A DNA stretch of 64,000 bases, taken from the NCBI GenBank assembly GCA_965202585.1, contig OZ241830.1, positions 37,882,001 through 37,946,000 of the forward strand. Reading direction: 5' to 3'. This document shows, piece after piece, positions 6,637 through 40,379 of the stretch. Source of the DNA: Thalia democratica (lineage: Eukaryota). Under the pieces are notes generated by a model. It was not told the DNA's origin and made no database searches. It worked only from the letters and a program-made list of their open reading frames with translations. The stretch's first letter is position 1; every line of letters begins with the position of its first letter. Both the position numbers and the translations under genes were made by a program.

Positions 6637-8390
6637 ATACTGCTTTATGGATCACAGAAGGAAAGTTCTCAGCAGATTTACCTCTTATCCTACTGAGTTG
6701 CCAGGCGTTCTGATCTCTGGTAGAGTTTTTAGAGTACAAGTGAAAGTATTGACCATGGTGGGTCATCAAGTGCAAACAATGAACTCTGTAAAATGTTTGT
6801 TTGACTTTATAAAAACAGAATTAGAATGGAAATTTAAAAAAAAAAAGCCAAAGATTAAAAAAAATGTGTTTGATAAACCTAACTTTAAAGAAAATATTCT
6901 GAGTGACCTTAAGCTGTCCTGACATTGTGATATTTTTTTCGAATTTGAATAAAAAATTAAAAGCTTTTTAAAACTAATGAAAATCAAGTTATTCAAAAAC
7001 TTTTTTATAAAATATGAAAATATTAAAATTAAATCTTTATCAAAACCTAAAAAAATAAGCCTAAGACTTTAGAAAACCTTAAAGCAGTCCTAAATTAAAA
7101 AAAAAACAAAACGATCCTGAATAAAAAAAACATAATCAAAATTCGAGAGTTATAGTAATCCATCCTTATTTTTTACAAATTATCTAAATACCCGGAGTAT
7201 CCTGAATGAGAGGTAACCCTTAATTTTAGTTAACCTAAGATTTTGAAAAAAAAATGATTGCCACTTTTTGGGGTTTTAAAAACTATCCTAAAAGAACAGT
7301 CCTGTATCAGAAATTTAAAAGAACTTTAGAAAATACTAAACAAATTTACAAACAAATTAAAATTTTTCAGAACTTTTTTGGATATACAGTATTTAAGTAT
7401 TGAAACTTGAAAAGCTAAATCTTTAAGATTTAAATGAGTTGAAGTAAATTTACCCTGAGTTTTAATTAAATCATTTTGACCTAGGTATACTGATACTTTT
7501 AAAACTTAAAATTTGAGTTATTCTTAATATATTAAATTACCTAGGGTTCCAAATGTTTTTGAGGATATTTTCAGGTTTTCTAAACTAATTTCGCTTTTGT
7601 AAAAGTACAAGTTATTGACTCTATTTATAATTTAAATGTAAGTTTAGAAAAAAATGTTTTAAATTGTATAAAAACATTAAAAAGATACTGTAAAGCTACT
7701 TAATTTTTTTTTATATAACAATTTTTTGTGATGTCTAAAATAAACTTTTCCATGTTAGATTTTTGTGTCAAATTGAATTTTTATTACTAAAATTTTAAAG
7801 TTTTGTTTAGTTTCTATGATGTTCCAGGTTTTATACTGTTCATTGTTTTAAGTTCAAGGTTTCCTCAAAATTTCTTAAATTCATGGATTTTTCATGTATT
7901 TTAGCCTAAATAGTCAAATTCCATATTTTTTCAGGACTTCAGATCTTTTGGCAACCCTGGTTATCTGAAGGTGTGTGAAGAAATTAAAGAATATACTGAG
8001 TATCCTGACTCAATGTATTAGAAAACTCTGGTAATATTATTAACTTCTTAGTTTTAAAGTTGTCAAAAGTATAACTGTATGAATTTATTTTAATAAAACA
8101 ATTACTATTATGTCAAAATAATATTCACATTAATTATGAAAAAAAATATTATGTGTTAATGTAAAAAATAATTACCGATCACTACATTATATATTTCATC
8201 ATAACAATACTTAGTAATTTGTATTGTAGCACAAAGCTTAAACTAGAAGATTTAATGAAATTAAATAAAGTTGTATACTAACATTTTCTTTATGAAATCT
8301 TAGAAATTCACTTTAAGAAGATTCTTTATAAGGCTCTTCCAGGAGAATGGATCTTACATTAATGATTTATTTACAATGAAATCGGTTTAG
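6637..8390 (+). pseudogene. Possible decayed multi-exon gene of unknown product (exons about 6637-6719, 7971-8030, 8304-8390)
   Basis: Three AG..GT-bounded segments join in phase 0: DTALWITEGKFSADLPLILLSCQAF*SL / VCEEIKEYTEYPDSMY*KTL / KFTLRRFFIRLFQENG. The stops are explicable by single C>T changes. A MITE end lies just upstream of the second acceptor. Not identified. Confidence 0.25.
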
Positions 8391-9840
8391 TCTGGAAAGT
8401 ATACTTAAAAATCAGTCTGATTTGCATTACTGCAAACTAAGATTTTTTTATAAGCATTTTGATTATTTTTATTTATACCCTTATCCCTAGCCCACCCTAA
8501 CCATACATAAACAACATTAACCAAAAAAAATTTTTTTTAATAATTACAATTGAAAAAAAATCATGAATAAAATATTTTTATTGCTGACTCAAAAAATATG
8601 CTAATCAAACTGACTTTAAGTTTACTACTCAATTTGGAGTTTCTTTTAACAGAAAAGTTATAAATGATAAAGGTTTTTAGCTTAAAATGCCAAGCGTCCA
8701 GTCTTGACTTCAGAAAATATAATTTAAAAAACAATTAAACTCAACAAAAATTTATTTATAATGAATCTGCTTTGAAAAATAGTTAGGAGAAAATACCAGA
8801 ATGAACTTAAAAAAAGGTTTTTATTAAGTAGAGTTGCCAAAAATACAGAGATCTGAATACTTATAAAACGAGTGTTTGTATTATACTGAAACATTATATA
8901 TGCTTGAGTTTTTTTTTATTAAAATCGCAAATATGGTCAGCTCAGCAGACTTCAAAATTAAAACAAGCCACTAAAAAGTTTTAAATTTGCAATATTAATT
9001 AAATAGTAAAAGTACTCGGTTCAGTTTTAAAAATATGTTACTGGTTTATGTCTAAAAGTTGTTAAACAATTTTTTATTACTATTCATTTAACTTTTTTTT
9101 TTTGTTAATCTGTTTCTCAAAATTATATACACTACTTATTAAAATATATTTTTTTATATCTTAAGTTTAATTTCTTAAACTCATTTCCTGTTTATTTTCG
9201 TTTTTAAAGTTGAAATTTTGTTATCAACGCTAAAACTACGGTCAACATGTTAATTCTACTACTTTATCCTTGTTTTTACCTATAAAAACTAATGATCTCA
9301 ATGTTAATTCTTAATTTATAAGTCCGTGTGACAAAATGGCTTTTACCGTGTGCAAGTGCAGTAATGTTCTTAAAATTGTTTCATTGTGGACAAAAAGTTT
9401 AGTACAGTGAAAAATATTAGTTTAGTTGTTTTTACTTAGTTTTATTAACCAGAAAAAGTACATTATAACATAAGTTAATGGTTTTCCAAAAGTTGTTTGT
9501 ATATTAAGACATCTTAATCATAAAAAAATAATATTTGTTGTAGAAATTTAGGAGTTTAGTAGCTTAGAGTGCACTGAATTTTTTTTCCAGTAATTAACTG
9601 TGCACAGCTTTTGTAAATGAGGAAAATCACTGATCTAAAATGGTTGTAACTCTTTCTAATAATTAATTTAATCTGTTTATAACTTTTTTTAATGCAAGGA
9701 TTTTATAATTTTGGTATGCAACTTGTGTTTTGTACAACTTTTTTAATGAAAACCTTCATCTTATTAATTTGCAAGTGTGCATTATAAAAGTTACTTAATA
9801 ATAGTTTTGAATGAAACTCCTGATCTAAAAAAACAATTTA

Positions 9841-10191
9841 CAGGGTTGCCAAACCTGGAAAAAAATGGAATTTGAGAATTTAGGCTAAAAAACTGGAAAA
9901 ACCTTGAATTTTATACAATTTTTACATGTTAAGTAGAAAGTTTGATTTGACACAATAAATCTACAATATAGATATATTTTTTTGTCATCTTAAATTTTTT
10001 TATTAATAAACACATGAAGAAGTAGCTTAACAGTATCTTTTCAAAGTTTTTTTTACTATTTAACACAGTTTTTACCTTAAACTTAACTTAATACTAAAAA
10101 TAGACCCAAAAATGTGTAATCTCAAAAATCTGGAGGAAATTTTAAAAACCCAAAGAAAATTTGCTATATATATATATATTTGGCAACCTTG
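9841..10191. mobile_element. MITE family 1 (CAGGGTTGCCA termini), about 350 bp
   Basis: TIR cagggttgccaaa / tttggcaaccttg; internal blocks (tttttacatgttaagtag, cttaacagtatctttt, aaaaacctggaa) shared with other copies. Confidence 0.7.
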
Positions 10192-10423
10192 CAAGTTATA
10201 TTTCCGAGCATTTATTTAAGTATCTTATTTTAAAGCAGATTTATACAACATTTTTCTGCTTCATTTTTTAGTGGGTTTGTTATTATGTATAGGAAATAAA
10301 AATAGGGTTTCAACTAATTTTGTATGCTACCAAGACAAAACTGTAGTGATAATTTTATTTTTCTATTTGCAAAATATTTTCAATTTGAAATACTTTTTTT
10401 GGTCATAGTCAAACAGCTTATAA

Positions 10424-10793
10424 CAGGATTGCCACTTTACCTAAAAAACTTTAAAAATCTGGAGCTTGAGAAATTAAAAAAAAACCTGGAATTTTGAACA
10501 AAAGTCACTAAAAAACCTGGAATTTTTAACAATTTATAATCTCAAGTAGTGAAATTTTGATTGTCAGAAAAAAACAATTACAAGAAAAATAATTTTGTCA
10601 ATATCAAAATATTTTTATTAAAAAACACATTTAAAGTTACTTAACAGTATCTTTTCAATGTTTTTATACTATTTAACAGAGTTTTTTACCTTCAACTTAA
10701 CTTTAAACTAAAAATAAACCCAAAAATGTCTACTTTTAAAAACCTGAAGGAATTTTGAAAACCCTGGAAAAATTTTTGGAAAAAACAACCCTG
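10424..10793. mobile_element. MITE family 1 copy
   Basis: caggattgcca ... caaccctg termini; internal sequence similar to 9841-10191. Confidence 0.65.
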
Positions 10794-11139
10794 TTATAAA
10801 AAATAAAAAAATTACCTTTGGTTTAAACTGCAAATTTAAATTTGTATTTGTGTGTTGACATTTAAATTAACATCACCTGCTTTTAGGTTTTTACTTGAAG
10901 TAAAAAACAAGTTCTAAACCTAAATAGACATATTTAAATGAACAACTTTTGGGAATCTGCTTTGTGTAATTAGTGTGTTAGTTTTTTTTTAAACATTTAT
11001 TTTGTTAGATGATATAACACTGTTGTAGCCAAACTGTATGTAATTTTTTTATATTTTAAATTACTTATTGTATTGTATAAGAAATATAACATATTTTATA
11101 TAAAACCAACTTGGTTAAAATTTTTGAGCTAATTAGATT

Positions 11140-12940
11140 TGTTTAAAACCAATTAAGAAATGTTATCAACTAAGCGCTTATTAGCCAAAAGCTTATGTAT
11201 TCAATTTACTTAAAGTTTCATCAGCTTGAGTTATTCTAACAGTATTAATTTCTTTATAAAGGTTTAAGCATTTCAATAAGTTTTTGCAGACACAAGGTTA
11301 TGTGTAGTTATGTACAAAAGTTTCAAAATATTTTGTAGTGAAACGTTAAATTATTGTATAAAATATGTTTTTTTAACAAATGTTTTTTGAGTTAGTACAT
11401 TTAGACAAATAAAAATTGTCAATTTATATCAGAGAATATATACTTCAAGATCTTTACATATATATGTATAGTGTGTTTAGAGATAGTAATCACTCTACAA
11501 AAGATGTAAAACTACTTCGAAGTATATATTCTAAAAGTAAAAGATCTTTAAAAACAAAATTTTAAAAATGTTCAGTTTTCATTTTGCATTAACATCATAT
11601 GATTCCACACACTCAGCCTAAATAGAGTAACTCTAGCTAATTTGAAATAACTTTAATATATCACCAAATCAAACTGCTTGTATTTTTCAAGATTTTCTGA
11701 CAAACTCAGGACAGTTTAAAGGGTGTTTGTATTAATTTATGCAACTTTATTTTATTGAAACTTAGTTGATTTACTTTATAAAACTCTGATACTTATAGTT
11801 AATTCATGCTGAGCTAATTTAGTTATTTTACTTTCCCGTATTGATCCCGTATTCGTTTATTAAGTAAAATTATGTTCCTTGGGGTTAGCTTCGCTTAAAA
11901 ATGAGAAATGTATTGTCCTCAAAAATTTCCTGTGGAAATTAAAATGAATTAGGTTAATTTGATAAAAATGTTTTTTAAGAAGTTATTAATAAAATTTAAA
12001 CAGCTTATAAAATAATAGACATTTTGTTTGGTTTTAACTTTACGTTTCACTTAATAACTGAAACGTCACTATAGTAAGGTTTTAGTCAATAAAATTTTGA
12101 CATTTGAGTTTACATAGTGTTTTTAAAGCAATTATATTGCATAGAAAAATTAAATCTAAATTGGTTTGCTTAAATATTACTAGAGTATAAGTATTTTTAT
12201 GTACTCTTTTTATTTTGAATAATGATACAAAATAATAAACATTTCGAAAACTGTATGCACTATTTTTTTTGTTTGTGATTGCATACCGTTTAACAAATAT
12301 AACATAATACATAATTAAACCAAATTATTCAAAAGCTTAAAGTAACCTTCTTATTATATAGTGCAAGTTAGTTATATTCATTCAGAGCCAAGTAGTAAGC
12401 TCTAATTACTAAGCATTTATAGCTTATTGAGTTGAAAGCTTATTAATTTAACCTTGCATTTTGCAACAATTAAACTGTTTTAAAACTAACAAATTCTTTT
12501 CTAAGATGAAAGCTATTAATAGGTTTTTGCAGACACAAGGTTATAGGAAGTTATGAACACAAGCAAGGGTTTTAAAATAATTAGTAGCAGAAGACAAAAT
12601 ACTTGTATTAAGTATGTTTTTTTATTAAAAGTTCTTTTAAGTAGGGAAGAAATAACAAAAACATAAAAATAACTCAATTATATTCAATTTATCAAATGTA
12701 TAAAAGATCTTTATATATATGTATATTATTTGGATAAACTAAGTGATCATCTTTGTAAAATCTGAAAAAAAAATTAAGAAGTTTAATTAACTAATTGTGT
12801 CAGATGTTTAAAAATTTTGAAAAACCTATTTTTATTTTATTTTAGAGAATTATATAGTTTCGAAACGTTTCCAAATGTTAACTCTTGCTAGTTTGAATTA
12901 ACGTGATTAACTTGCAAAATCAAGCTGTTTTTTTTTCAGG
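11140..12940. repeat. Old diverged direct duplication (about 11140-11700 vs 12400-12940)
   Basis: Shared collinear motifs such as gtttttgcagacacaaggttat, aagatcttta(c/t)atatatatgtata and taactct(a/t)gcta. Confidence 0.5.
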
Positions 12941-14810
12941 GTTGCTAAAAATTTGACAATTTAGACTAAAAAACCTAGAATTTGAATAACTTTGAAAAAA
13001 AAAGAAAAAACTGGAATTTTAAATAAAAATCATTAAAAAAGCCTGGAAATTTTAAAAATGTTAACATGTTAAGTAGTAAAATTTCAATTTGATACATCCA
13101 TCCAATTTGATACAAAAATTCTATCATGTAGATAAACATTTTTTTGTAAATAGTTAGACTAATTCAGACTAGTTTAATTTTTTAAGTATGTTATCTTTTG
13201 AATCAATATTGCACTTTTAAAACAAAACATTTTTTGATATAGGTAAAAAGTTTTGTCAGATCCTATATATATGTTCATATTATATTACTTTATGTATTTA
13301 ATTTATTAGTTCTGAAAAAGTATATATTTTTTCTTCCTTTTATATACATTGTGTACTGTTATAAACTGGAAGCTGCTTAAAAAATAAGATAAGCATTCTG
13401 TTTTATTTTTAAATGGTGTTGCGGTGATATTAGCTTTATTACTTCATTTATATATCATTTAAATTAACTTCAAGATAGTATTAAATACAACATTTTTGAC
13501 TAAGTTAATAGCAGTCAAATATTTTGATAAAGGCTTATGTTAAATTAGTTATAGTCTGTTACTAAAAGTACTTATAATCCATTAAAATGTTGAAAAAATG
13601 AACAAATTATGTAAAGCTAATTAAAAATGATCAGCTAAACAAACAATATTTGATTTTGGTCAACTAACCATATATAAGTACTTATTAGCATACTTAAAAA
13701 AAATTTAGTGACTATAAACTCAACATTTTTTATTAGAAGAGGATTAAATAGTGTAGTAACCATTTTACCTGAAGTTTGATATTTTCGAATAAAAAAATTG
13801 GGATATAAACAAAAATAATTAAAATACAAGTTAATAAAAAAAATAAAGTAAATAAAACTCAGACAAAAAAAGTTAAATACAATATTGCTTTTTTTAAGTT
13901 GTACAATAATTAAAGTACAAAAGAGAATAAAGTATTAAGTAAAGAAAAAGGTAAAACTAAGGATGTTTTTTTAAAACAAGACTTAAAAATATCTAATTCA
14001 ATGTTGGTCAAACAAGTCTACTTAGGATAACATCTCAGATTAGTTTAAAGCTTTCGAAAACTCATAGTATTAACATTTTTTTTCTAAATCTCAGGGTAGT
14101 TATTTTTACTTTAACACTTTTTTGTCCTACCAGTTTTTTTTTTGTTTACCATCTACGTATTTTTAGGTGCTTTTATTCAAATAAGTGGTTGAAACTGGTT
14201 ATACAAAAAAAAATCAAGTGAGGTAGAAGCTCAATGTATTTTAAAAGTATTAACTGAAAATGCAGACAGTTACAGTAGTATTATAAATTTAAGTACATTT
14301 TTTGCATGTTTTGTCGTGTGAATTTTATATTGCATAATCAAATTTTGAAATCCATTCGTAAAGAAACTTAGTAATTGTATAAAAGTTTTAATAAACAATT
14401 TTTATCACATGGTTTTTCTATTTATTTATTATTTACATTACCATAAACAGTTATTTTGTTTACTATATGGGTGATATTAAATAGTTATTATAATTTTTTC
14501 ATAAACTCAAGCTGAAATTTTGCCTCTAAGAATTATATTTTGCCTCAATATATGTTCATTAAAATAGTCCAAAGTGGTTGTGGCTCAAATGAGATTAAAC
14601 CTTTTTCCTAGCACTACAGCTAAGATTGTACTATCGATTGACTTGATTAGTTATAACTTTTGAAAATTGATTTTAAAGCATGTCTACCATGCTTACATTT
14701 AAATATAACCAAAACGGTAAGTGTTTAGTTTAAATGCAATTTTAAATTAAAAAAAAGTAACCAAAAAGTAATTGCTTTTATCAACATCAAGCAGAAGCTT
14801 TAAACATACT

Positions 14811-17800
14811 ATGAGCACCAGATATTCCATTTTACTGCTGTTGCTGCTTTACGGCGGGTCGGTTTCCGCCTCTTTCGTGCCCAAGGGACAGAATGATGTC
14901 ATGGAGTTGCGAGACATGCAGTATTGTCCCACCAACCAAATCAAGGAAGACCTGATCCTCAACGTTCCGAGTAAAGACACGTGTCGGGCGTTGTTGCACG
15001 CCAACGATCCCAAGACCTTCAAAGCGGACGTGAGTTTTGCACCGTGGGCTAGTAAATGTATTTGGCAAAATTAGTGTTTTTGCAAGCTTGTTTGTTTTTA
15101 TATTTTGATCATGCACAGTGGAACTGTAATTGAATAAAATAATTTTGCTTTATTAAATGACAAAATTTGTTTTAAGCAGTGTGTATACCTGTTAAAAATC
15201 TTTCATTTTCAACGGGTGCACTACTATTTAAATTTCGATAATTTATATTTTTATATTTTTTTTAAATACCACAACTCAAAAAGTAATATGTATTTGATAA
15301 ATAAAAATAAGGTTGCCAAAAAGCCTAGAAAAACCTGAAATTTTACTAATTAGGCTAAAAGAAACCTGAAATTTGAGAAAGAGAAAAAAAACTGTAACTT
15401 TGAACAGTTTCACTAAAAGGCCTGAAAGTTAAAACAACGTTTACATGTTAAGTAGTAAAATTTTAATTTGCTTAAAAAATTAATTGTATTAATAAAAATT
15501 TTTGTCATCATCAAATTTTAAAATTAAAACACATTTAAAGGAGCATTAAGGTATATTTTAATGTTCTTATACTATTAAGCATAGATTTTACCTTCAACTT
15601 AATTTAAGTTTAAAAATAAACCCTAAAACGTGTAATTTTAAAAACCTCGAACAAGTTTTTAAAACCTGGAGAAAATTTTCCGAAAAACATTTCGGTTACC
15701 CTGTAAAAAATGCGTATGTAGGTTACATTTATAACTACAAACACTTTTTTTTTCTATTAGGTTTTTATATATTTTAAGAGATATGGCTAGGTAAGTTTTA
15801 TATTATATTAATTTTAATAAACTAAAAAAAAATCAATAGTTTTTTTATTAATCCCAAGAAGTGTTTGTAGGTTTTAGTTATACCTAATATATATTTTTAT
15901 TAATATTAGGTATGAGTTTTACATACCTATTTCTAAAATATACATATATTACTTTTTGAGTTGTGGCGCTTTTAACAAATTTACAAGAAATCAAATTCTC
16001 GTAATTTTAACTGTCTGAAATTGAATTTTCATGTAACCGTCTTCGAAAATCTGATAAAGTTTTATGAAGCTTTTTTCATTGAAAATATATTATAAGTAAT
16101 CTTAAGTTCCAAGGACATAAAAAGATAACCTAATTACTTATCAAGTGAAAATTAAATAAACTTAATCTGTTTTTAAAACGAATAAGTATTGAATGTAGAA
16201 AGAGTAACAAGTACAGGATTTCCAAAATTCTGGAAGCTTTAAAAATCCCGTATTTTACAATTAAGGCTGAAAAAAATGAAAAACTTTAAAAAAAACGTGG
16301 AATTTAAACAAAAATCACTAAAAAACTAGGAAAAACCTAGAATTTCAAACAATTTTTACATGTTTAGTAGTAAAATTTTAATTTTATAAGAAAAATCTAC
16401 CATATAGGTTAAAAAATTTTAATATCTTTGAAACATTTTTATATGAAAAAATATTTTATTTATTTAAGATTATTTTACAGTATCTTTTTAATGTTGTTAC
16501 ACTTAAGAGGGTTGCCAATCTTGAATCCTGGAATTTGACAATCTGGAATTTTAAACATATTTTACATGTTATTTTAGTGTTTTATTTGTTACGTTTGGAC
16601 GGTTAAAAGTATAACAATTCAGGTTTATGTTTTTACAAAATGTTAGAAACAGATGTTTGAAATTAAAAATTTACTGCTGTATTTAAACTTCGTCTTGTTT
16701 GCATAAAATATTATGAATAAAAAAAAAATCAACGTTATTTCTGTTGCCAACCCAGTAATTTTATGGTAGCATTATATTTAATTTAGACAAGAATCACAGT
16801 TTAAAAATTAGTTGTGAGGTGAAATTATATTTCTAAACAGTACTATCGACTGAAAATTTGTTAAGAGAACAAACGAATAAAATTTAATGATTTGAATTAA
16901 TGACTTTAAACCTTTTAAATCGAAAAAAAAGCAACTGGTAAAGTGCTTAAAACTCCGTAAAAAAACTAAAATGAAAAAAGGCTATGACTCTAAACTAATT
17001 TTTAGTTGCAATTTACTTACTAAATATCTGAATACAACTTTACTTAAAAACTTAAGATAAATTGTGAAATTTATATATAAAGCTATATACATGATAGGAA
17101 AATATAAATTTATTCCTTAAAGCATGCTAAAGACATTTAGGACGTGCCGAAACAGCAGAACAATTTGTACATCTTTAATTTTTTTGCATTCAAAATCATT
17201 TGTACCGTCCAGGCTTAAAAACACTTTACTAAATATCAAAAGCAGCTAAGCATTAAGAACAAAAATAACTGCTTTGTCCGTCGGTTACGAAAATTTTAAA
17301 CTATTTCAACAGCTGTACGCGCCGCTGAGCGTTCACCAGACCTACAAGACCTGGTCGTGCAAGATCAAGATCTACACCCACTTCGAAACTTACTTTTTTT
17401 GGACGCTGCAATCTGATGATATTAGCAAGATTAGATATTTTCAAACGCTCGATGACACATACTTCAAGATCCAGGGCAATCCTACGGCCAGAACAGAACT
17501 TAATGAAAAACTGAAAAACGAGGACGAACAAGACCCTAATTCGAACAAGGAAAAATGGGAATATGATCCATTCTTTGAAAAGATCGAAGCGTGGGGGGAA
17601 ATTGGTATAAGAAGCTATGAGGATTTGTGCAGATACATGATTGAACACAAGCATGCGCCCGAGATGGGCGGAGCAATGAAAGAAAGTAATTTTTTAATAA
17701 TTTTTTTTTTCAAATAAGTTTTTTCAAGCACCTTAAAGTTTTAGATGTTGTTTTGTCAAATTGTTCAGTTATTTAGTTTGGAGATTTGACGGTGGTGTGC

Positions 17801-20800
17801 AAAATTATCATAGTTTACTTAAGATTTGTTTTCTTAAAACACAATGTTGAAAGTTGATTTAAGGTTAAAGTTGTTTAATTGCATGCTATTGACTACACTT
17901 TCTAAATTACTAGGCCCGATGTACAAAAATAAGTATCTATCTAAATAACATCGTAAAGTTCAAAACTACTTGCAGTCTTATCATTGAGTTTTTTTTTTGA
18001 TAAAACATAAGACTTTTACGGACTAGTTGAGTTATACTAATCTACTAACGAACAATTATTGAGAATTTGTAGAAAATAATGTTTTAAACACTATAACAAA
18101 ATGTAAACCTACAACGATAGGAACACAAACATAACTCATGTTCTGCAAATTTTATTTAAAAAATGCACTTTTAAAGAAATATCGCCCACTCAATAACTTT
18201 TTTTATTGTTAATATATCACATGAGCATGTGCATTAAGTTTTTGCCCACCTTACTATTCCACTAAAATTAAATGCCTTTCGAAACTCAACAATTTTTTTT
18301 TTCGATCAAAATTCGCAGCCGTTTGTTTCAATTCAAACCTACGTTTTAATTTGCAGTGGGCCACAACCAGTGGGCGGCGAAAAAAGACTACGAAGAAGAC
18401 CAGGTTTTCCATAGCAAGGGCTTTGACTGCGGGGACAAATATAGCTCCGCCGCCAAGGATGTCCTCGAATGGGCGTGGACAATCGGGAACTGCAGAGCGT
18501 GGCTCAGAACGTACGAGGCGCATTTGGAAGTGGACTACATCAAGTACAACCCGGTCAGCAAAGAAGTCAAAGGGCCCATAAGCGAGAAAGACTGGACACT
18601 CCAGTGTCCGTGGACGCATGACAAAGACTTAGACAAAGAAGTGATTAACTACTGCCAGTTAGTTTTGTTCGTTTTTTGGTGGTGATTACTTGATACTTCG
18701 TACATGAATATACATGTTTGTTATAAGTAATTGTTTCGAAGTCAATGCAGAGAAGGTCATCAAGGTCATTAAAGTGTTTTAAGTTGTTAATGGATTGTAT
18801 TTCGACTTTTCTGGTATGTTTTTAACGGTTACATGACAATTCAAATTCCGACAATTAAATTTCTAAAAAAAAATTAAAGGGCCACAACTTTTAAAGTATT
18901 ATATAAGTGACAAAAATAAAAAATATGTATGTTGATCTTATTAGTATCTACAAGCTATTTTTTTATTTTTGTAAAATAATAAATGTTTCTAAAGATATTA
19001 AAAAAGTAATAAAAATAACTATACTTAAAAAAACATTTTAGTCATATCAAAAAATATTTAATATTCTATAAAAAGAAAAAAAAATGCTTGTAGATATTAA
19101 CAAGACAAACATATGTATTTTTTATTTTTCTCAAATATATAATACTTTGAAAGTTGTGGCCCTTTAAATTTTTTTATTAGAATTTGAATTGTCGGAATTT
19201 GAAATATCGTGCACCCGTTTTTAACAATCAAATATTCAAGTATAGCTTCGAAGTCTAGACTAATAGGTTACTTATTTTGTAAACGGAGTAGTTATGGGCA
19301 TGTTTGCAAAATAACAATTACACCTAACTGATTTGTCAGCTGTTAAAAAACAAAGTATAGTTAATTTAAAGACTTTATAAAAAAATGTTTCTTTTATTTA
19401 GTTTTTTACTAAATTGCAGGTCAAACACGGCCATGTACGTGTTCGAAGAATGGAAAACGGTAGATGGAGATCGAAAAAAGGTTGATCTGCCAGATAAAAA
19501 GGGTTGTGCAAAATATGACTATCTTAAGGGTCATAGTGTGGATATCCAGCTTTTTTCTTCCTATGACGGAGGCTCCCCGACAATGGTTATTCCAGAGTTT
19601 GACATGTTTATCAGAGACTTCAGAACGTGTCCCAAGCGCGTCAGGTTGCAAACTTTTCTAAGCCATCTGTTTCAAACTAATCTTATTCTAAGTTAATTTT
19701 TTCTTAATAACAAACAAACTAGAGTTTCGTACCCGCCAAAGTTTTGTTATACAGAGTTTCTTAAGTAAGCAAGTTTCAAATGAAGTTTAAATTGATAGTT
19801 CAATGCTTGTTAATATTTCTAGAATTTTTTTTTTGTCTTTATTCAACTAACACTAGTTATTAAGATGTTTATTATTTGCTATCTTACTTGACTGTAAAAA
19901 TTGATTACATTAGACTGAAGATTAAGATTGAAACAAATTTAGCACAATAAATCAATATGTCAAAATTCAATAAAATTAGATAAAAATGTTTTGCAAAAAA
20001 AAGGTTTGTAGTATAAAAAAACTCTCAAACCAAACTACTTTTAACTTATGAAAAAGCTGTTCACACATGTAACGTTATGTTAAAATATAATTTTTCATTT
20101 TGTATTTTAGAGAATGCCATGAAGACTACGAGACAATGCTATGTACAGCAGGTGGATTCATGATTGGTTCACATGAATTTACTAAAGAACTTGCAGATAT
20201 AGAATTGGGAAAAGCCGTCCAAAGAAACAAAAATGAGGTTTACGCAGCTTTATTTAGAACTAAACACATGCTACCCCCTTTTTTTGTAAATGATACATAT
20301 TTAATATAATTTTTTAGACCACCACTAATTCAATCAAATGATTGAAATCAAAAAAAAAAGAATACTTGTTCGTCGGCCTTAAATTTAAAATTAAAACAGC
20401 TACTGATTTTTAAATAAAGCTGCATTTATTATTTTTCTATATAAATATTTAGACCTTAAACAAAATTTTGAACTCTAATATTATTAGTTAAACAAAGTAG
20501 TTTTGTTGAGAAAAATACTTAATTCGTATCTTTATTTTAATATCAACAATTTCCACAGAGAGACTTAAGTCCGGAAAGAGACGCTATGTTTAAGTCATTG
20601 AGCAACGACATTAGTTTGGACATACAACAGCAAGTGAACTACATTGCCTACAAAAACTGCTTGGCTCAACGTGACATGTTCCACACGCTGAAGTTGGCGG
20701 CTGAACACGTCCCAACGAACGTAAATAGCATTTTTAGTTTTCGCAACGAAAGTTGTTTCGTGACGCGCGAACTAGCAGCGCAAAGCGTGTTTAAACTGAA

Positions 20801-21939
20801 GTAAATTATTTTTTTTTCAGGTGGCGCGGGAAGTGACGGGGGACGAAGGGCTGGTCGCCAGTCACCAGCCTTCGGGAACGTTGAGCGTTTTGAACGGTTG
20901 CAAGCGAGTGACCGCCATGTTGCAGCGCAGTCTCAAAGTTTCCGACTACGACAAAGACGGGGGGTTCAAGTTGAAAACGGCGAACCGGCCAGTCATTCTC
21001 TTTGTGAAGGAGCCCGGAACGAAGCCTGTCAGAGGCCAGCTGATGGAAGGCGGATGGATAAAAGAAGGCATCACTCGCTATACGACGAATGATGAACCCC
21101 ACCGGCAGCTCTTTCAAGTTTTAGATCGGATAATCGAGTTTGACGAAAACGGCAATTTCAAGAACTCGTCCGTCCAACCTTCAAAACTCCAGCCTCTAGT
21201 AGCCAACTGGAAATTGACCTTGCACGATCTGCCGTTGGCGGCCTTAGACCAAGCTTCCCAAAAAGCTCAGCCTGACAAGGGCTTGGACGAGATCTCGTTG
21301 GGCCTTGAATTCGGAAAGTCAGCATACGACTCGAGCGTGTATCTGTACAATAAAATGACGCAATACGACGTGACAACCAGCAGACACAATGTTCTGAGAA
21401 ACGATAAACCTAATGGTGATGAAAATCCCGAAGATGAATATAGTAGTTTTGCTAAATTTTTAGATATGATCAACTGGGATTATAACAAATCGGTTGCTGA
21501 AAATTTTAAAAACTACATTTTATTTGATACTTTTTTCGTATCTTTTTCAAAAATATGCGTTACAATCTCTGCAGCATGTATCGCAGTGATTTTCTCAAGT
21601 TTTTTAATGCAAGGAACGTGGTACAACTGTCACAAGTTCATCAAGAACATTAGTGAGTCGCGAAAGGAAATTCGAGAAAAGAACGAAATGAGCAGGTTTT
21701 TGTTGGGGAAAGAAGGAAGCTCGGATGAGGAAAGCTCATACGACTCCGAAGATTCCTCAAGTGATGACTACAGTGATAGCGAAGACTACAGTGATAGCGA
21801 TGACTATAGTGATAGCGATGACTATAGTGATAGCGACACTGACTTTTCCACTGATAGTGATGAGATCACTGATAGTGATTACGATAGCGATAGTGATGAC
21901 GACAGCGACAGTTATTTTGACAGTGAAAACTCATCATGA
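14811..21939 (+). CDS. gB-like class III fusion glycoprotein, paralogue A (7 coding exons, about 841 aa)
   Basis: Exons 14811-15029, 17313-17685, 18357-18657, 19420-19644, 20111-20237, 20559-20720, 20821-21939. All introns are GT-AG, with phases 0,1,2,2,0,0 giving one open frame of 2526 nt. Signal peptide MSTRYSILLLLLLYGGSVSA; YCP..C N-terminus; TAGGFMIG; YIAYKNCL..AAEHVPTNVAREVTG..GTLSVLNGCKRV; NRPVILF..VRGQLMEGG..PHRQLF; TM ICVTISAACIAVIFSSFLM; acidic tail. Confidence 0.85.
15212..16040. mobile_element. Foldback MITE (ACGGKTRCA termini) in intron 1 of gene A, with a MITE family 1 copy nested at about 15308-15703
   Basis: acgggtgcac..ccacaactcaaaaagtaatat on the left and atattactttttgagttgtgg..tgtaaccgt on the right; the family 1 element (aggttgccaaa..ttaccctg) sits between the arms. 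Confidence 0.6.
18825..19218. mobile_element. Foldback MITE (long inverted repeat, about 190 bp arms) in intron 3 of gene A
   Basis: aattcaaattccgacaatt..gggccacaacttt..tatctacaagc on the left mirrors gcttgtagata..aaagttgtggccc..aattgtcggaatttgaa on the right; termini acggttaca / gcacccgt. Confidence 0.75.
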
Positions 21940-22549
21940 TCCGAAGATTAGATGATCGTTAAAAGTAATTATTTTTTAGTTTAAAACTAACTGATTTACT
22001 TGTTTTTTTTTTTTTGCGAATAAATATAATATATAATTAAAAACTATATGTTGTACTCCCTAACGTAAAAATTTACGAAGACATATTATTAAGCTACGTA
22101 AATTATTTTGTATCAAACATGAAGTAATTTTAAACTACATTAGTCTCACTAATTCGTGTACCTCATTTTATACGTTTATTATTTCGTTCTTATTCCTTCT
22201 TAGACGCTAAAGTGAAACCTTTTTGTTTGAAAATATAAAAGTCCATATAATTACAAAAACTTATAACAGTTTTATAGCGTGAAACTTTCTGAAAAGTTGA
22301 AGTTTAAACAACATTTTTTATATAAATAAGTTTCAAAAGTTTTAGTGCTAACCTGGATTATGTTTAATTTGGCTTTCTACAGTTATAAACCTATTTATAA
22401 ATATTTCTTTTAGTAGTTGCTAATACAAAAATGAACACTTTAAAAGTAGTACTGTTCAACCTTAATGCTTGACTCCTTGGTACAACATTCGTGGTTATAA
22501 ATAAAATTTAAACCAAATGGTAAATTTAAAATAAAAAATAAGTCTAGCT

Positions 22550-23760
22550 ATTCTTAATTTGTACACCTGAGACATAAAAGTTCTGGCTTAACTAAAGTGA
22601 AATTTTTTTCATGATTGTAGCTAGATACTACATCTAAAATGAATAACGTCGTCGATTTTTTATAGTTTTTCTCTGATGGCAAAGCCTACTGGTAATGCCA
22701 AACATATTTATTTCTTTGGCTCTAACATAATAATGTACAACTTCTCAACTGAAAAAGAGCACTATAGTGAAAAGCACGTTTCAGACGATTTACCATCGTC
22801 TTCAAATCAACAGTGATGTAGAGCAAATCAAACTGGAAAATATTCTTTCATATGGCAAGAATGTTTTTCTTTTTAAAAACATTTGCCAATAAAGCCATTT
22901 AAATTACGAATTTGAAACTCTTTTAGGCAAACGATCATCTACAGTGTAATTTAAAAAAGATTGAACGTAGTTTAAAGTTAAATTTTTTTCTAACTAAATT
23001 GTTTAATTTTTTTTTATTTCGCTTGTTACTACTTTACAAATCCTATTTTTCAACCCAAATATTAAAACATCTTTAAAAAAGTAAACAACAACAACAACAA
23101 TTTTCAAAATGGTCTGCTTTATCAAACTTACGTACATTTGCCTGCGTTGAACAAACACGAAAGTTTAACGGATTTTTTTTTAACTTTCTGAGTTGTACTT
23201 TATGGTCTTCTAAACAAACGGTGAATCTGTTTTGTTAGTTTGAGACCTTAAAACGCACGTCAGTTCAGTGAAACAAAAACTTTGCAGTTTTTCGTTTCTG
23301 CCATACACCAGCCAGCCTGTTTCGTTTAGATATTTTTCGACCAACATACTGGCAATGACTGTTTCAAAAGTTTGTTTAAAGAAACCTGGAGCTTCGCGTG
23401 TGCTCGCACACTTTTTAAGACGACTCACTTCCGCAACCACCGAACAATCCTGATTTTCAGCGATGCGGCGTCATCGCTCGCAGTGTTTCGTCGGTGCGCG
23501 TTGTGCGGGCGCGTACGGATCTTCATTTTGCATGAAGTTTTCCTGCGGTACGACGCATGTGGTTTGTTTTTAACAAACGCTTGGTTCGATGCGGGTTTCT
23601 TTTGCGGTCGTCGAGTGCCCCTGAAAAACGTGGCAAAGTGGTCTGCTGCGACGAGTGTCCGGGTCGTTGCGACCTCAGAGAACTGAAGGTTTGATTGTAA
23701 CTAGCAACTGTTGAAGTGTGATAAGCCGTTTGTCGAACAAACTTTTACTTGAAGGCTTAA
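22550..23760 (-). pseudogene. Decayed coding relic of unknown product between A and B (duplicated at about 43430-44630)
   Basis: GC-richer island. One minus frame of about 190 codons is broken by three stops (..PLCHVFQGH..C*KQTTC..CER*RRIAENQDCSVVAEVSRLKKC..VEKYLNETGWLVYG). A second segment FDLLYITVDLKTMVNRLKRAFHYSALFQLRSCTLLC*.. also carries stops. Confidence 0.3.
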
Positions 23761-25087
23761 TCGTTTGAACTCCAGTGTTTAATGTTTATTTTTAGCTCAG
23801 TTGAAATTCCCCGTATAAAATGTTCATAACCGTACTTTAAACTTACTTAGAAAATGCAAACGCATGCTAAAGATAATTTAATGAATTTTTGTTGTTTAAA
23901 ATTTTCTTAAGTTAGATTAGATTTTTAGTTGCGGGCCCACTGTGTATTTATTTTAACTCCTTTTGATATTTATAGTTTAAATTGTTACTTAGTCTTTTGT
24001 ATTTTACGAAAAATATTTTTCATAAGTTTTTATCCAATGCACAATTTTACAAATAAGAATTATCAAATTAAGAAAGAATTAAATACTAATACTAAGATTT
24101 CATAGTTTTGAATGTATCTTATTGTTTAAGTTTATTATGATTTCAAAAAAATTAGTCATAATTTATTGTGTTACTATTATTAAACTGTTTATGTGAATAA
24201 TATCGCATGTTTTTTTCTACTTATTTTGAAACACATTCAGTAAAATTTTACTTTACATACTACAAACTAAACTGAGTTCGTATTGCTTTTTATTTAAACT
24301 GTGTCATTTGGCATACGTACTTTAAATTAAAGTAACATCCGAATTAAAATAATAGTACAATAACTAAGTAACCGACAGAATGTCACTGAACTAAAAATAA
24401 CAGTTTTACTTTTAGGTTTGAATAATCATAACTATCTAAACGCATCTCGGACAACTATGCTTTTTTGTTTCAACTAAAAATGGAAATTGTATTTGGCTTT
24501 AAGTTTTGTAGTTATAAAATTAAAAAGAAAGAAAGCGATACATGTAGTAAGTATTTACACGTAACTTCATCAAATAGTTTTATGTAGTTAATTCATTAAC
24601 TATAGAAATCTTCAAATACAACTTAGAGTTTATCACAATGTTTATTATGGTAAAATTTTTAAAATAGCTATTGTGTTTGAAACATTGTATCCAACTTTTA
24701 ATTAGAATTTCAATTGCGGCTGATAATTTATTATTATTTTAAGCAAAGTTGTTGTAGATTAGAAAATAATAATTTTAAAATTAAATTGAAGAAAAAATTT
24801 AAACAACTTACTTATAACATCGGTTTATAATTAAGTTTCTTGATGAAATTAAATTTCAGATTAAACACAATCTCCTATTTTAAAAGTTTTAAATCTTTTA
24901 GAGTTGTTGAAATAGTTATCAAAATACATTCATCAAATTAGAAGTGATTAGCTAGGCATATAAGATTAAATTTTCATAATTTCCATTTAGCGCACTTATC
25001 CAAATACATTTATGATTATCTTAATTTTAGATTAGATTGGATTAAATTATAAAATTAAAAACTCACAATACTTCGCAAATAAATACC

Positions 25088-25216
25088 ATGCTGCCATCAA
25101 GGATATCTAAAGTTTTTTTTTGTCACACTAGCTGTGGCACTTTTTTGTAAAAGTGTTTTTCTCTAAAATAACTTGCGACACTTTGTTAAGACGAAGCTAA
25201 GACCTTCGAGGCAGAC
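25088..25216 (+). pseudogene. Relic first exon of an additional gB-like paralogue
   Basis: accATGctgc start region, then (t)gcgacactttgtt..acgaagctaagaccttcgaggcagac|GTGAGTTTTG. This matches the 3' end and donor of B/C exon 1, with internal deletions. Confidence 0.7.
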
Positions 25217-25589
25217 GTGAGTTTTGCTGGCTGTGAGTGGCGTAACGATATCAAGTGACAAAATGTATAAGTTTAAATCAAACTTATTTTTAAACTGATA
25301 GAATAAGTGTAAGCTAGTCTAGCTAATGATAACAGCAAATATTTTTGCAAAAATTCTATACTGGGCAGTTATATAAAAAACAGCTTTAAGAATTATTTTG
25401 TATACGATTTACTAGATATTTTTATCAAATTTTGTGAAATTAAAATTCTAGACATAGTTTTATTATGGTCTCAGTCGTACTTAATACTAGTAAAAATTGT
25501 TTGAAAATCATTCTACTTATTTAAAACTTTGTACTAGTTTAATTTTTTGCTCAAACTAATATATAAAACGACTTTAAAAGATATTTTTT

Positions 25590-25971
25590 GTGGTTGCACG
25601 ACTTTTAAATTTTGAATAAATAAAATTCCGTTTATTCAAATACTTTAAAAAAAATTAAGTACACAACTCAAAAAGTAAAATATTTTTATTTTAATGTACA
25701 AGCAGGCCTAAGAGATACCTACAAACCTTTTCTTTGAAAAGATTTAAATAATTTTGAAGTTACGGTTAAAATAATTTTTAAAATATAGATATTTTTATTA
25801 GTTTGTAAACTTTTATTTTAGAAACTATTTATTTGCAAAAACGAAAAAGTTTTTCTTAGACCTACATACGCACTTTTTATTTCGTTTAAACATATATTAC
25901 TTTTCGAGTTGTGGCCTTTAAACATTTTTTTCAGAACTTAAATGTCTAAATTTGAATTCTTATGTAACCAT
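25590..25971. mobile_element. Foldback MITE, same family as 18825-19218 (duplicated at 46444-46824)
   Basis: ggttgcacgac..cacaactcaaaaagtaa / ttacttttcgagttgtgg..tatgtaaccat inverted arms. Confidence 0.55.
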
Positions 25972-26736
25972 TTAAATGCTATAATAAAGACTAAAATATT
26001 TTAATTTCAAATTCTAATGATGTCAAAAGTTAGTCATAGCCTTATGTTTTTAATGTAACAAACAAAAAACTTAAAGTTTACGTTAAAAAAAAATGTTTTG
26101 TTAAACATACGAATGATTTTATATTTTGTACGTTTACTTATTTTAAAACTTACATAGTAATTTATAAAAAAGTTTAACTGATAAAAGTATTTTTTGTTGT
26201 GAATAAGATGTGAATACTAAATCTAAATGTGAATCTAGATCTAAATGTGAATAAGATTGTTATTGACTTAAAATATTTACATTATGTTTAAACTATTTTA
26301 AAGTAGTTTAAAACGGTCGCACGACAATTGAGATTAGGATAATTAAATTTCGGACAGCTCAAATTTATATTAAACTGCCACAACTTAAAAGAATGAACAT
26401 TTGAAATAAATTATTTCTTTTTGAGATATTGTCTTTTAAATATTTATTTTAGAAGTTGAACTGTAAGAAGTTTGATAGTCTAAATTTGAGTTGTTATTTA
26501 ACCATTTAAAAAATTATGGCTTGCATGATTATATGTAGTTTTTACAATTATTTGACTCGATTAGTTACAGCTTAAAAAAATCACTTTCGGCTAAGTAGGT
26601 CTTACTTAAATTTAAACTCCTTATCAATTAAAAAAACGAAATTTTTAGACTAAATGCAATATCAAGATATTAATTTTAAAAACTAAGCAGAAGATAATTG
26701 CTCCTGTCAACTTTAGGCAGACGTTTTAAATATACT

Positions 26737-29700
26737 ATGAAAGCGCTTTTTTTAACCATGCTGCTGCATTTCGGAGGGTTGGGTTCTTCCTCCATGTTCG
26801 AAGGGAGCAGGGAGGTGGTGAAGTTGCAAAACATGGCTTACTGCCCGACCAACAAGGTCAAGGAAAGCTTGGAGCTCAACGTACCGCCGAAAAAAACGTG
26901 CGACACTTTGTTGGCAGCCAACGAAGCTAAGACCTTCAAGGCTGACGTGAGTTTTGAATGTTTTGAAAATTTAGCAAAGTTGGTTTTAAACTAAAAATTT
27001 TTTGTAACCTTGGTTGTGTTTATTAGTTAATCACGTGTGCTAAAACTGACGCTGAGTGTGCTCTTACTAAGAGTTGTTTAAAACTGAGAAACGTAGTGTT
27101 TGTTGTATGAGGAGGGTTTATGTGATTTGTAAAATTTTTTTTTTAACAAATTACTATAGTTTCATAACTATTTTCGTATAAAAATGTAGTCGCTTAAGTA
27201 AATCTAGGTGGTTTAGTACACAAAAATAGTACTTGATTACTATCATAATTTGAAATACAAGTTTTAGGTAAATCTGTTTAGAAAAAAAAGTGCTAAATCT
27301 AGAATGCGTAATGACACTAATTTGTTTTTTTAAATCAAGTTTTTATTTTTGTAGTAGTATTTTGTAATTAAATATAAAGTTGGTAATTTATTTTTATTTT
27401 TGTATAATTAGCTCATGCATACGTTTAGTTTTTAGATCAAAAGTTTGAACTCTCAACAATTGTACTTGAGTAATAACCTAATTATAACTTAAGATTTTCG
27501 AGAGATTCAAAATTATCTCTATATATGAATTCTATGAAATTTAATAATTGTATTTACATAAGTTTTTGTATTTAAAAATAATAAATATTTGTTTCTGTTT
27601 ACTAAAACAATGGATTTAGTTTTTATGTAATCTCTAAATAGTTTGAAGTTTGATTTCAAATTTGTAGTCTTTTGAAATATTCTGAAACTATCAAAAAAAA
27701 GTCATTATAAACCATAGCCTATGTATGTTAAGTTATGATTTCTGTAAAGAAGTTATATCCAATAAAACAAAAATAATACTTTCTGAACAACTTTTAGTTT
27801 AAAAATACTACATAAATACTTTCTCTTTTACAATTAAAATTGAGTATTTCAGGTTTGGGATCTAAGTATCTGTTTTTAAAATACTGAAATTGTTCTTTTT
27901 ATAATAGCTTAAGTTTTTCTTTTAATAGAATAAAAAACTATAACTATTTTTTGTATTATAGCTAACTTAGAAATTTTTTTTAATGTTTATATAAAGTAAT
28001 TAACTACCATAATTTCCTTAGAAAATTTAAAAGTTTTTTTTATCAAGATTTATTCTGGGAACGGGACACTTTTGCACGGCGTCACTTTTGTACGAGTGGA
28101 CAATTTTGCACAGCAACTCTTTTGCACGAGCGTCACTTTAGCACGAGGGGACACTTTTGCACAGCGTCACTATTGCACGAGAGTAAAAAAAAATATATAA
28201 AACAAAATATAAAACGAATTTAATAAAAACAAACTGTTAAAAAAAAAGTTACTAATTGAGGGTAAGGGTTAGCGGTAACAGTGTTAGTAAGTATAAAAAA
28301 GAAATAAATTTAAAATAAACGAATAAAAAATAAAAATATAAACTAATAAAAAGAAAAAAAAAAGTTAAAAAAAGTTACCGACCAAAGGTAAGGGTTAGGG
28401 GTAACAGTGATAGAAAAAAAAACAGGAAAATAATATTAAGTCATAAAAATAAATTATAAAAATTAAAAAAGATATATGATAAAATTACCGATCGAGGGGT
28501 AAGGGTTAAGGGTAATAGTGATAACAATAATTAAAGTAAAATTTATTTTTCAACCTGTGCAAAAGTGTCCCCTCGTGCTAAAATGACGCTCTGTGCAATA
28601 GTGACGCCGTGCAAAAGTGTCCCCTAGTGCTAAAGTGACTCTCATGCAAAAGAGTCGCCATGCAATAGTGACACCCACCCTTTATTCTAAAGAGCTAAAG
28701 GCTGTAAGAAAGCTCACATTGTTTTGAAAATATAAACACTTTGAACAATTTATTTTTTAAATATCATCTTAAAAATTCCTACTTTAAACTATTTAAAGCA
28801 GTAAATAGCAACTGGTAGTTTGTTTAAAAACTGGTAGTTTGTTTGTTTTGTAATTGCGAATTAATCACTACATTACATACACCAACTTGAAGTTAAGCAT
28901 AATTATTTAAAGAAGTTATACACTTGCAACAAACTAACACATTACTCTTTAAAACTAAAAACTTGCTGAAGACATAAAAAGGACGTGCAAAAACACAGAA
29001 AAAATTTGCGCGCTTTTCAACGCTTGTCGTGCTTACAATCGTACGTACGTCTACAAAAAAAGACATACTGAACAAAAAACAGCTTAGCGTAATTTTATTG
29101 ATCTGTACAAAAAATGTTTTTCGACGTCATCTACCGTTTTTCCGCACAGCTGTTCGTGCCCAAGAGCGTCCACCAGACCTACGAGGTCTACTCGTGCAAG
29201 ATACCGTACTTCTACGAGTTCCAAACCTACTACTTGTGGTCCATGCAAAACAAGGACCCGGTCCACGACGCGGCGCTCAACGCCATCCTCCACGACCACT
29301 ACTTCAAGGTGCAGGGCAACGACGGGTACTTCCGGGAGCTGGCGAGGAACCTGACCGAGGACGCGAGAAACAAGGACCACAACAAGGAGTTGTTCGAGGA
29401 CGACCCGTACTTGTTGAGGTTCAAGAACAGGTGGCACGAGCTGGGAATGAGGAGGTTCGAGGACGTGTGCAGGCACTGGGTCGAGCACAAGGATGCGCCG
29501 GCTTTTGGCGGGAAAATGAAAGAAAGTTTGTTTTATGTTTTGTAGTTAGATCTTTAAAACAAACCGCCTGAAAGAAACGTACTAAACAATTTTTTTCAAA
29601 GCTTTCGCTGTTTAAGAAAAACTATCAATAAAAACTGCTTTTAACAAAAAATAAAACATGCACATGCAATGAAAGTTTTCATTTTGGCCCCTCCGTATTA

Positions 29701-29953
29701 ACTCACTGCAATTTAACGCGTTTCACGAGTTGATATTTACTTTGTCTTTCAACCACACGGCCGTTTGTTTCGATTCGCAACACTTTGCATTTTCAAAAGC
29801 GCTTGTTGATTCGCAGTAGGCCACAACCAGTGGAGCGTGACGCACAGTGCGGAGCGGGTGCATCACGAGGATTACGACTGCGACTACTTGGGTGTCAAAA
29901 AAATAAACTGCGTGCTGTGGCAGAGGTATTTTCAGCTATTCTCTCAAAATTAG
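26737..29953 (+). pseudogene. gB-like paralogue B: 3'-truncated copy of C (exons 26737-26946, 29150-29525, 29817-29953); could encode a secreted 240-aa fragment
   Basis: Exons 1-2 and the start of exon 3 are nearly identical to C. Homology stops at 29926 (..TGG CAG AGG), and the frame then reads YFQLFSQN to a TAG at 29951-29953. Exons 4-7 are absent downstream. Confidence 0.75.
28057..28680. mobile_element. Non-autonomous DNA transposon (Merlin-like) with 8-bp TSD, in intron 1 of B
   Basis: TSD TTTATTCT at 28049-28056 and 28681-28688; GG-starting imperfect TIRs; inverted subterminal arrays of about 18-nt cacttttgcac units; three internal gggtaagggttag blocks. The superfamily is inferred from TSD length and GG termini only. 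Confidence 0.7.
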
Positions 29954-40278: not shown

Positions 40279-40379
40279 CTATCAGTCATTCTTTCAACTT
40301 ATAAAAATTTTAAAATCCACAAAATTTCGAAAAAACAGACCTCCCGCTGTTTTACAAATATTTTTTCAAACTTTCTGCT

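Follow-up and report, generated by a model that had tools for sequence, protein, structure and literature searches.

The stretch of DNA analysed here (the window) is 64 kb of contig OZ241830.1 of Thalia democratica (positions 37,882,001 to 37,946,000 of the forward strand), and it contains no runs of N. It is very AT-rich (intergenic GC 0.22-0.26), and the GC-richer islands in it are exons. Two genes on the plus strand, gene A (14811-21939) and gene C (47542-53200), are the subject of this study, and a broken copy, B, lies between them. We consider it quite probable that A and C are tandem paralogues of a spliced host gene, and that this gene, which would encode a distant relative of herpesvirus glycoprotein B (gB), was captured and has since been kept by selection.

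The translated comparison of A and C gave seven colinear coding blocks, and both genes have seven coding exons and six introns (857 codons in A and 842 in C). An earlier note on this DNA had reported that the two genes share all intron positions and phases (0,1,2,2,0,0). This was confirmed from the reading of the borders: the codon positions of the introns are identical, GT was found at 11 of the 12 donors, and AG at all acceptors. The exons are as follows (a slash marks the exon end).

14811-15029, plus strand: A exon 1, with the ATG, the signal peptide and Cys 39 and 58; donor GAC/GTGAGT, phase 0
17313-17685, plus strand: A exon 2, preceded by intron 1 of 2283 nt; donor AAA/GTAATT, phase 1
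18357-18657, plus strand: A exon 3, with 4 Cys; donor CCA/GTTAGT, phase 2
19420-19644, plus strand: A exon 4; donor CAG/GTTGCA, phase 2; the Tara contig L002 has the same borders
20111-20285, plus strand: A exon 5; donor TTT/GTAAAT, phase 0, with an alternative in-phase GAG/GT 48 nt upstream; residues 26-50 align to the domain II helix of gB
20559-20720, plus strand: A exon 6, a candidate central-helix segment with its Cys aligned on an invariant gB Cys; donor AAC/GTAAAT, phase 0
20821-21939, plus strand: A exon 7, stop codon included, with the ectodomain end, the gB-like motif at exon residues 52-107, the transmembrane (TM) segment at protein residues 730-748 and an acidic Ser/Asp/Tyr tail
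47542-47751, plus strand: C exon 1
49481-49856, plus strand: C exon 2
50148-50403, plus strand: C exon 3
50740-50955, plus strand: C exon 4
51362-51536, plus strand: C exon 5, delimited by homology with A, without GT at 51537-51538; with the alternative in-phase donor, the last exon position would be 51488
51801-51962, plus strand: C exon 6
52067-53200, plus strand: C exon 7, stop codon included

The amino-acid identity between A and C is 50, 45, 49, 68, 57, 67, and 57% for exons 1 to 7 and 55% overall, which agrees with the moderate similarity estimated earlier (about 65% for exon 4, and lower for exons 3 and 7). All 14 ectodomain cysteines (2+2+4+2+2+1+1 per exon) align between A and C, as had also been claimed. 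In addition, the indels in the coding parts are multiples of three. Meanwhile, the reading frame of A stops (window 21925-21955) four codons before those of the A-type fragment of B (42820-42840), C (53180-53200) and the Tara copy introduced below.

Word searches found only short metagenome contigs as relatives. Two of them, L001 and L002, come from one Tara Oceans sample and carry an A-type exon 7 and an A-type exon 4, respectively, with a neutral divergence of about 6-9%. The ratio dN/dS (omega) was estimated with a pairwise codon model (F3x4) and tested against omega = 1, and pooled values were obtained by adding up codon counts or site likelihoods over the exons.

A vs C, whole gene: omega 0.50, dS 0.78, p = 4e-10
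A vs C, exons 1-3: omega 0.17, dS 2.9, p = 3e-13
A vs C, exons 4-6: omega 1.26, dS 0.24, p = 0.39, not different from 1
A vs C, exon 7 ectodomain: omega 0.39, dS 1.14, p = 1e-5
A vs C, TM plus tail: omega 0.41, dS 0.51, p = 0.003
A vs Tara, exon 4: omega 0.08, dS 0.30, p = 4e-6
A vs Tara, exon 7: omega 0.58, dS 0.17, p = 0.019
A vs Tara, exons 4 and 7: omega 0.44, dS 0.19, p = 7e-5

The Nei-Gojobori omega of A vs C (0.47, bootstrap 0.37-0.58) agrees with the codon model. Furthermore, when the observed A/C differences were placed at random, exons 4-6 received a mean of 4.9 stops and the probability of no stop, P(no stop), was 0.007, which means that these exons are not in simple decay; for the other parts the probability was < 2e-4. 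The reading frames of A and C are kept open by selection, as seen for the pair together; an orthologue of C type, which would allow C to be judged on its own, did not turn up in a word search with exon 2 of C. The earlier note had proposed purifying selection on both copies and had named a dN/dS near 1 as the result that would speak against it. Purifying selection is seen for the gene as a whole and for A against its Tara relative; in exons 4-6, where omega is about 1.3, the refuting result is met with locally, and the proposal is further qualified by intron 5 of C, which has no canonical donor.

The divergence between A and C is a mosaic. Synonymous divergence is lower in exons 4-6 (26/109 sites) than elsewhere (99/161 sites; Fisher p = 8e-10), and the low-dS exons coincide with the stretch in which the introns can be aligned.

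19334-21153, plus strand: candidate gene-conversion tract of A, aligning with C 50649-52390 at the nucleotide level, exons and intron parts alike (BLAST pieces 19334-19718 and 20070-21153; exon dS 0.17-0.36)

The mosaic dS and the alignable introns in the same tract suggest that gene conversion between the tandem paralogues produced a younger middle tract. In that case, the alignable intron edges date the last exchange and not the duplication. In addition, the GC content at third codon positions (GC3) differs strongly between A and C in exons 1-3 and 7 (for example, 0.56 in A vs 0.91 in C for exon 2). Because of this difference, dS is inflated in exons 1-3 and unreliable in exons 1-3 and 7. 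The GC3 difference itself hints at different expression or at biased conversion.

Two results count against selection on both genes, namely the omega of about 1 in exons 4-6 and the absence of GT at 51537-51538 of C, the site homologous to the intron-5 donor of A. They would fit an alternative in which C, or the middle of one copy, is decaying, so that the locus would hold one working gene and one young pseudogene, and purifying selection on both copies would be wrong. Furthermore, exon 4 of A is highly constrained against its Tara relative (omega 0.08), and thus it was probably along the branch of C that most amino-acid replacements in exons 4-6 took place. The locus also sheds broken copies, such as B and the deletion copy in contigs L003 and L004. 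However, C has no stop or frameshift in 842 codons, and a lack of stops would be improbable by chance even for exons 4-6. All 14 cysteines are kept, the coding indels preserve the frame, and GC3 of C is the higher one, like that of a host exon. An in-phase CAG/GT is also present in C 48 nt upstream of the modelled end of exon 5, and its equivalent in A is GAG/GT. On this evidence, we regard decay as unlikely. The upstream GAG/GT or CAG/GT was considered as the true exon-5 donor in both genes, and it is disfavoured though not settled: the gB match runs through the 16 codons that follow it, which favours the downstream border, and the donor of C would then be non-canonical.

Copy B is a set of fragments and not a gene. 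Its two pieces are separated by about 12 kb of unrelated DNA.

26737-29926, plus strand: copy B 5' piece, 96-99% identical to C and made up of exons 1 and 2 of C type and the initial 110 nt of exon 3, after which the homology ends
41842-42834, plus strand: copy B 3' piece, in which the end of an A-type exon 2, followed by some 55 nt of intron 2, runs straight into exon 7 at about codon 88

The 3' piece has lost about 3.3 kb internally, so that the end of exon 2 is followed by only the last two thirds of exon 7. Intron 1 of B has about 533 bp (27491-28023) that are absent from C, and the flanks 21084-27490 and 41985-48293 are 96% identical. Meanwhile, L003:1-572 and L004:1-503, which come from other samples, are 97% identical to A and match window 19177-19538 and 20656-20866. 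They are without 19539-20655, which reaches from the middle of exon 4 to the middle of exon 6; 4 nt overlap at the junction, and the frame is not preserved. These contigs represent either another broken copy or a deletion allele.

To compare the product of A and C with known proteins, searches and folds were made exon by exon. The protein of about 850 aa has a type I topology, with a signal peptide, an ectodomain of about 700 aa, one TM helix about 110 residues from the C-terminus and an acidic tail. Hydropathy peaks lie at residues 5-23 and 730-748 of A and at 3-21 and 701-719 of C, and the ectodomain has only 2-4 N-glycosylation sequons. The top Pfam family for exon 7 was PF00606 (herpesvirus gB ectodomain) in A, C and the Tara copy alike (14.4, 17.0, and 16.8 bits; E = 0.027, 0.0043, and 0.0049), and all three matches fall on profile positions 74-158. 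As a reference, herpesvirus genomes in IMG/VR were found with a degenerate gB motif, and 16 complete gB open reading frames (ORFs) were extracted and aligned, all 16 of them confirmed by Pfam. The exon 7 profile matched these 16 gB proteins in hhalign with P = 1e-4 and a score of 43.1 over 56 columns; the maximum among shuffles was 29.5, and 0 of 130 column shuffles reached the score. This match lies in the domain III-IV region of gB, where residues 52-107 of exon 7 match the RP...GQL.E...F crown motif. Exon 5 matched the domain II helix (P = 0.007, reached by 2 of 110 shuffles). The best match of exon 6 was not significant (P = 0.28); it is exactly colinear and places the Cys of exon 6 on an invariant gB Cys column. 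In addition, Cys 27 of exon 7 sits about where the next invariant gB Cys is expected. Thus, exons 5, 6 and 7 are colinear on gB, and the match takes in the helix Cys and the residues RP, GQL, E and F, none of which varies among the 16 gB proteins. From these similarities, which do not extend to domain I, it is very likely that the A/C product is a genuine, though very distant, relative of gB-type (class III) fusion proteins.

Several results weigh against the relationship to gB. The Pfam matches (14-17 bits) do not reach the gathering score of PF00606 (43 bits), and the similarity covers only about 110 of 850 residues. Exons 1-4 gave only noise in the Pfam and hhalign comparisons with gB, though domain I with the fusion loops is expected there; a run of aromatic residues in exon 2 (YFFW in A, YYLW in C) is no more than a candidate for such a loop. 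A HMMER search with the exon-7 profile against 1.84 billion proteins yielded nothing but the Tara copy and one bacterial cadherin-repeat protein, a spurious match, and no gB was found when exons and exon profiles were compared with PDB sequences by phmmer and hmmsearch. AlphaFold models of exon 7 and of its crown segment were unusable (predicted local distance difference test, pLDDT, of 37 for both). In favour of gB, 23 of the top 50 PDB matches in Foldseek to the first of these low-confidence models were gB chains, from herpes simplex virus 1 (HSV-1), varicella-zoster virus (VZV), human cytomegalovirus (HCMV) and pseudorabies virus (PRV), each of them non-significant; the Foldseek searches with the models of pLDDT 37 gave no significant match and are not interpretable.

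The low Pfam scores, the PDB sequence searches without gB, the lack of matches in exons 1-4 and the unusable models would fit a non-viral origin, in which A and C encoded a fast-evolving, lineage-restricted cellular membrane glycoprotein. The likeness to gB would then be a short convergent or chance motif, and the introns would be ancestral, with none gained. However, the hhalign score of exon 7 is far outside the shuffle distribution, three exons are colinear on gB and cover its invariant residues, and the length and topology equal those of gB. Thus, a non-viral origin seems quite unlikely to us, and a distant gB-type protein is preferred.

The product of A and C resembles herpesvirus gB (PF00606, PF17416, PF17417) in its type I topology, its length (842-857 aa vs 870-993 aa), the position of the TM segment about 110 aa from the C-terminus and an acidic cluster in the tail. 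To these can be added the colinear order of exons 5, 6 and 7 on the domain II helix, the candidate central-helix Cys and the crown motif. On the other hand, A and C lie in a cellular genome, are split by six introns, score below the family threshold and have no detectable match to PH1 (domain I). They also differ in their 14 ectodomain cysteines, 2-4 sequons and repeat-encoded tail.

21616-21915, plus strand: tail segment of A, with 86% nucleotide identity to C 52835-53128 and 18-nt repeats encoding DDYSDS at 21763-21836 (A) and 52982-53083 (C)

The copy number of this 18-nt tandem repeat is 4.1 in A, 2.9 in the A-type fragment of B (42667-42719) and 5.7 in C. The acidic DDYSDS-repeat tail probably directs trafficking.

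The introns of A and C range from 100 to 2283 nt in length and are of the spliceosomal type. Their GC content (0.21-0.27, and 0.36 in the short intron 6) is near the intergenic level. Since shuffled AT-rich sequence alone reaches 63-79% identity, global nucleotide identity per segment was uninformative, and homology of the intron edges was tested with local alignments against shuffles. The signal was above the shuffles (z = 8-12) at the 3' end of intron 3, at either end of intron 4, over most of intron 5 and throughout intron 6. It was weak for intron 1, and in intron 2 only a patch of 17 nt, located 25-45 nt ahead of the acceptor, stood out (z = 5.7). The alignable edges described earlier for introns 2, 4 and 6 do exist, but most of them belong to the tract that diverged later than the rest of the gene. 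The 17-nt element (GCCGTTTGTTTC..., at 18318-18334 in A and 50091-50107 in C) is kept despite saturated synonymous sites nearby, and it may be a branch-site or regulatory element.

The positions and phases are shared by all introns, including introns 1 and 2 in the saturated part of the gene (dS about 2.9), and introns 3-6 have homologous sequence. Together, these observations show that the six coding-region introns predate the divergence of A and C. Alternatively, introns 4-6 and part of intron 3 might have been copied between the paralogues by gene conversion, and they need not predate the original duplication. Low exon dS and alignable introns are indeed found together only in 19334-21153 and 50649-52390. 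Nevertheless, tandem duplication of DNA copies introns anyway, and introns 1 and 2 are at identical positions as well. Conversion would alter the dating of the intron sequence and not the spliced state of the ancestral gene. For these reasons, we think it very unlikely that copying explains the shared introns, and their presence in the ancestral gene is the preferred explanation.

Each of the 16 herpesvirus gB genes retrieved consists of one ORF of 870-993 aa, and gB-type env genes of retroelements are described as uninterrupted ORFs as well (PMC13524379). The same introns in a viral or retroelement source, which the earlier note had taken as a possible refutation, were thus not seen among these genes. 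Furthermore, no ORF of gag or pol size and no pair of long terminal repeats (LTRs), or LTR-like long repeats, was found within the 64-kb window. The intron GC is like that of intergenic DNA, and the exon GC3, which reaches 0.91, is like that of a neighbouring PARP-like exon. This exon is a GC-rich open frame on the minus strand that runs off the window start (1-504; GC 0.61, GC3 0.87), with a match to the PARP catalytic domain PF00644 at E = 0.0024, below the cut-off, and it is probably an exon of a neighbouring host gene. Taking the intronless gB and env genes together with the absence of gag/pol-sized ORFs and the composition of introns and exons, the simplest reading is that the introns were gained after the capture of an intronless gene. 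The earlier proposal that six introns were gained before the duplication therefore stands in its timing, while the gain itself stays an inference, as the homology to gB is remote. It is scarcely credible that A and C are instead undomesticated env genes, belonging to a virus or retroelement that still moves or was integrated recently: gB-type env genes are common in LTR elements of invertebrates (PMC13524379) and several fragmentary copies lie here, but the six spliceosomal-type introns with host-like AT content, the lack of gag/pol-sized ORFs, of LTR pairs and of relatives in IMG/VR, and the tandem copies with shared flanks, which were duplicated as DNA and not transposed, all speak against it.

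Target-site-duplication-like repeats across the intron borders, as in introner-type gain, were searched for, and none of at least 4 nt was found. Dispersed repeats within introns 1 and 3 of A (15362-16503, 18820-19079) recur at 7565-13094 and 25728-25976, so that the long introns were enlarged by repeat insertions. In addition, C-type intron 1 has two arrays of 16-18-nt repeats in opposite orientation (28061-28179 and 28554-28639; 48336-48452 and 48848-48933), which look like a foldback element or a miniature inverted-repeat transposable element.

The intron 3 acceptor, the intron 4 donor and the intron 6 acceptor in L001 and L002 are identical to those of A. Judging by the divergence values, the A/C duplication is much older than the split of about 9% neutral divergence between A and its Tara relative. 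No relatives were found in scans of IMG/VR and JGI metagenomes, and no orthologue deeper than this relative was detectable in the database and metagenome searches. The earlier note had inferred long residence in the host and had suggested that orthologues with the same introns could date the capture. Long residence is plausible in a relative sense only, and the Tara fragments keep the sampled borders of introns 3, 4 and 6. Meanwhile, the part of L001 downstream of its A-type exon 7 (L001:818-2032) matches the downstream flank of C (window 52763-54049) and not that of A, with 9% divergence. L001 could be a genuine recombinant of A and C, or else a chimera assembled across the conserved tail, and in either case the relative also carries a C-type flank.

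The history of the locus could have been as follows. First, an intronless viral or retroelement gB-type gene would have been captured. Second, this gene would have acquired host-like AT-rich introns, and tandem duplication would have followed. Later, unequal recombination and gene conversion would have produced the younger middle tract, the homogenised tail and the broken chimera B.

The function is inferred from family resemblance only, as that of a membrane-anchored gB-like glycoprotein, and this also limits the proposal. The N-terminal third and the C-terminal crown are conserved between A and C, and the middle, which is equivalent to gB domain II plus the linker, changes fast. Conserved ends with a fast middle fit a cell-cell fusogen, and they also fit a receptor-blocking or decoy antiviral factor. 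More broadly, we tentatively propose, as a possibility that is still doubtful, that a marine planktonic eukaryote has domesticated a class III gB-type fusogen, which would now form a gene family with several exons. This family would comprise two selected paralogues with a diversifying domain II and linker, and would serve as a fusogen of the cell or as a decoy against viruses; syncytin and Iris would thereby have their first counterpart of gB type.

Two known systems can be compared with A and C. The mammalian syncytins and Drosophila Iris (an F-type env-derived host gene) are domesticated viral envelope genes. As in these genes, a virus-type fusogen ORF would have been kept in the host, was duplicated and is partly fast-evolving. 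In contrast, A and C are of the class III gB type, and not of class I or F type, and have multiple, probably acquired, introns in the coding region. An ORF kept open under purifying selection, which marks a domesticated envelope gene, was found here (omega 0.50 for A-C and 0.44 for A-Tara; P(no stop) <2e-4 to 0.007). To our knowledge, domestication of a viral fusogen has so far been described only for envelope genes of class I or F type, namely the syncytins and Iris, and our literature search found no report of a gB-type gene turned into a spliced, duplicated and selected host gene. The second system is the gB-type ENV of Ty3/gypsy errantiviruses and BEL/Pao elements (Chary & Hayashi, eLife 2026, PMC13524379), which is likewise a gB-type protein resident in invertebrate genomes. 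These ENV proteins have extra lineage-specific cysteine bridges in domains I and II and are so extremely divergent that they are recognisable mainly by structure (PMC13524379), and in both respects A and C can be likened to them. However, ENV is an uninterrupted ORF in an LTR element beside gag and pol, whereas A and C have six introns, are tandem selected paralogues and have no retroelement context. Shared introns are among the strongest evidence for a long-standing host gene as opposed to a recent integration. If the proposal is true, class III fusogens can be co-opted too, the locus is an example from nature of a captured gene that had no introns and gained several, and a divergent gB relative becomes available for the study of fold evolution.

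The earlier note had also claimed that both genes have an intron in the 5' untranslated region (5'UTR), with GTAAGT at 14717 and GTAGGT at 26595. Both hexamers exist. They are about 40 columns apart in the upstream alignment and thus not homologous, and the one at 26595 lies upstream of the truncated copy B and not of C, where the corresponding site is 47399. The claim in this form is not confirmed.

14711-14810, plus strand: upstream segment, about 100 nt before the ATG of A, aligning with C 47437-47541; an acceptor-like site lies about 20 nt before the ATG in both

A 5'UTR intron ending about 20 nt before the ATG is possible in both genes, and unproven. In addition, GC-rich islands at 23176-23800 (with a copy at 44051-44700) and at 40101-41250 have open frames on both strands and match no Pfam family. 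The C-type start codons follow about 3 kb downstream of the island at 23176-23800, which could therefore serve as a promoter or as a first exon without coding sequence.

Scans of the window for Rfam families and for tRNA genes gave no match. Finally, a 78-nt tandem repeat (about 3.5 copies) was found in 39890-40284, and it is followed by a palindrome of perfect spacing with 63-nt arms that are 95% complementary (40159-40284).

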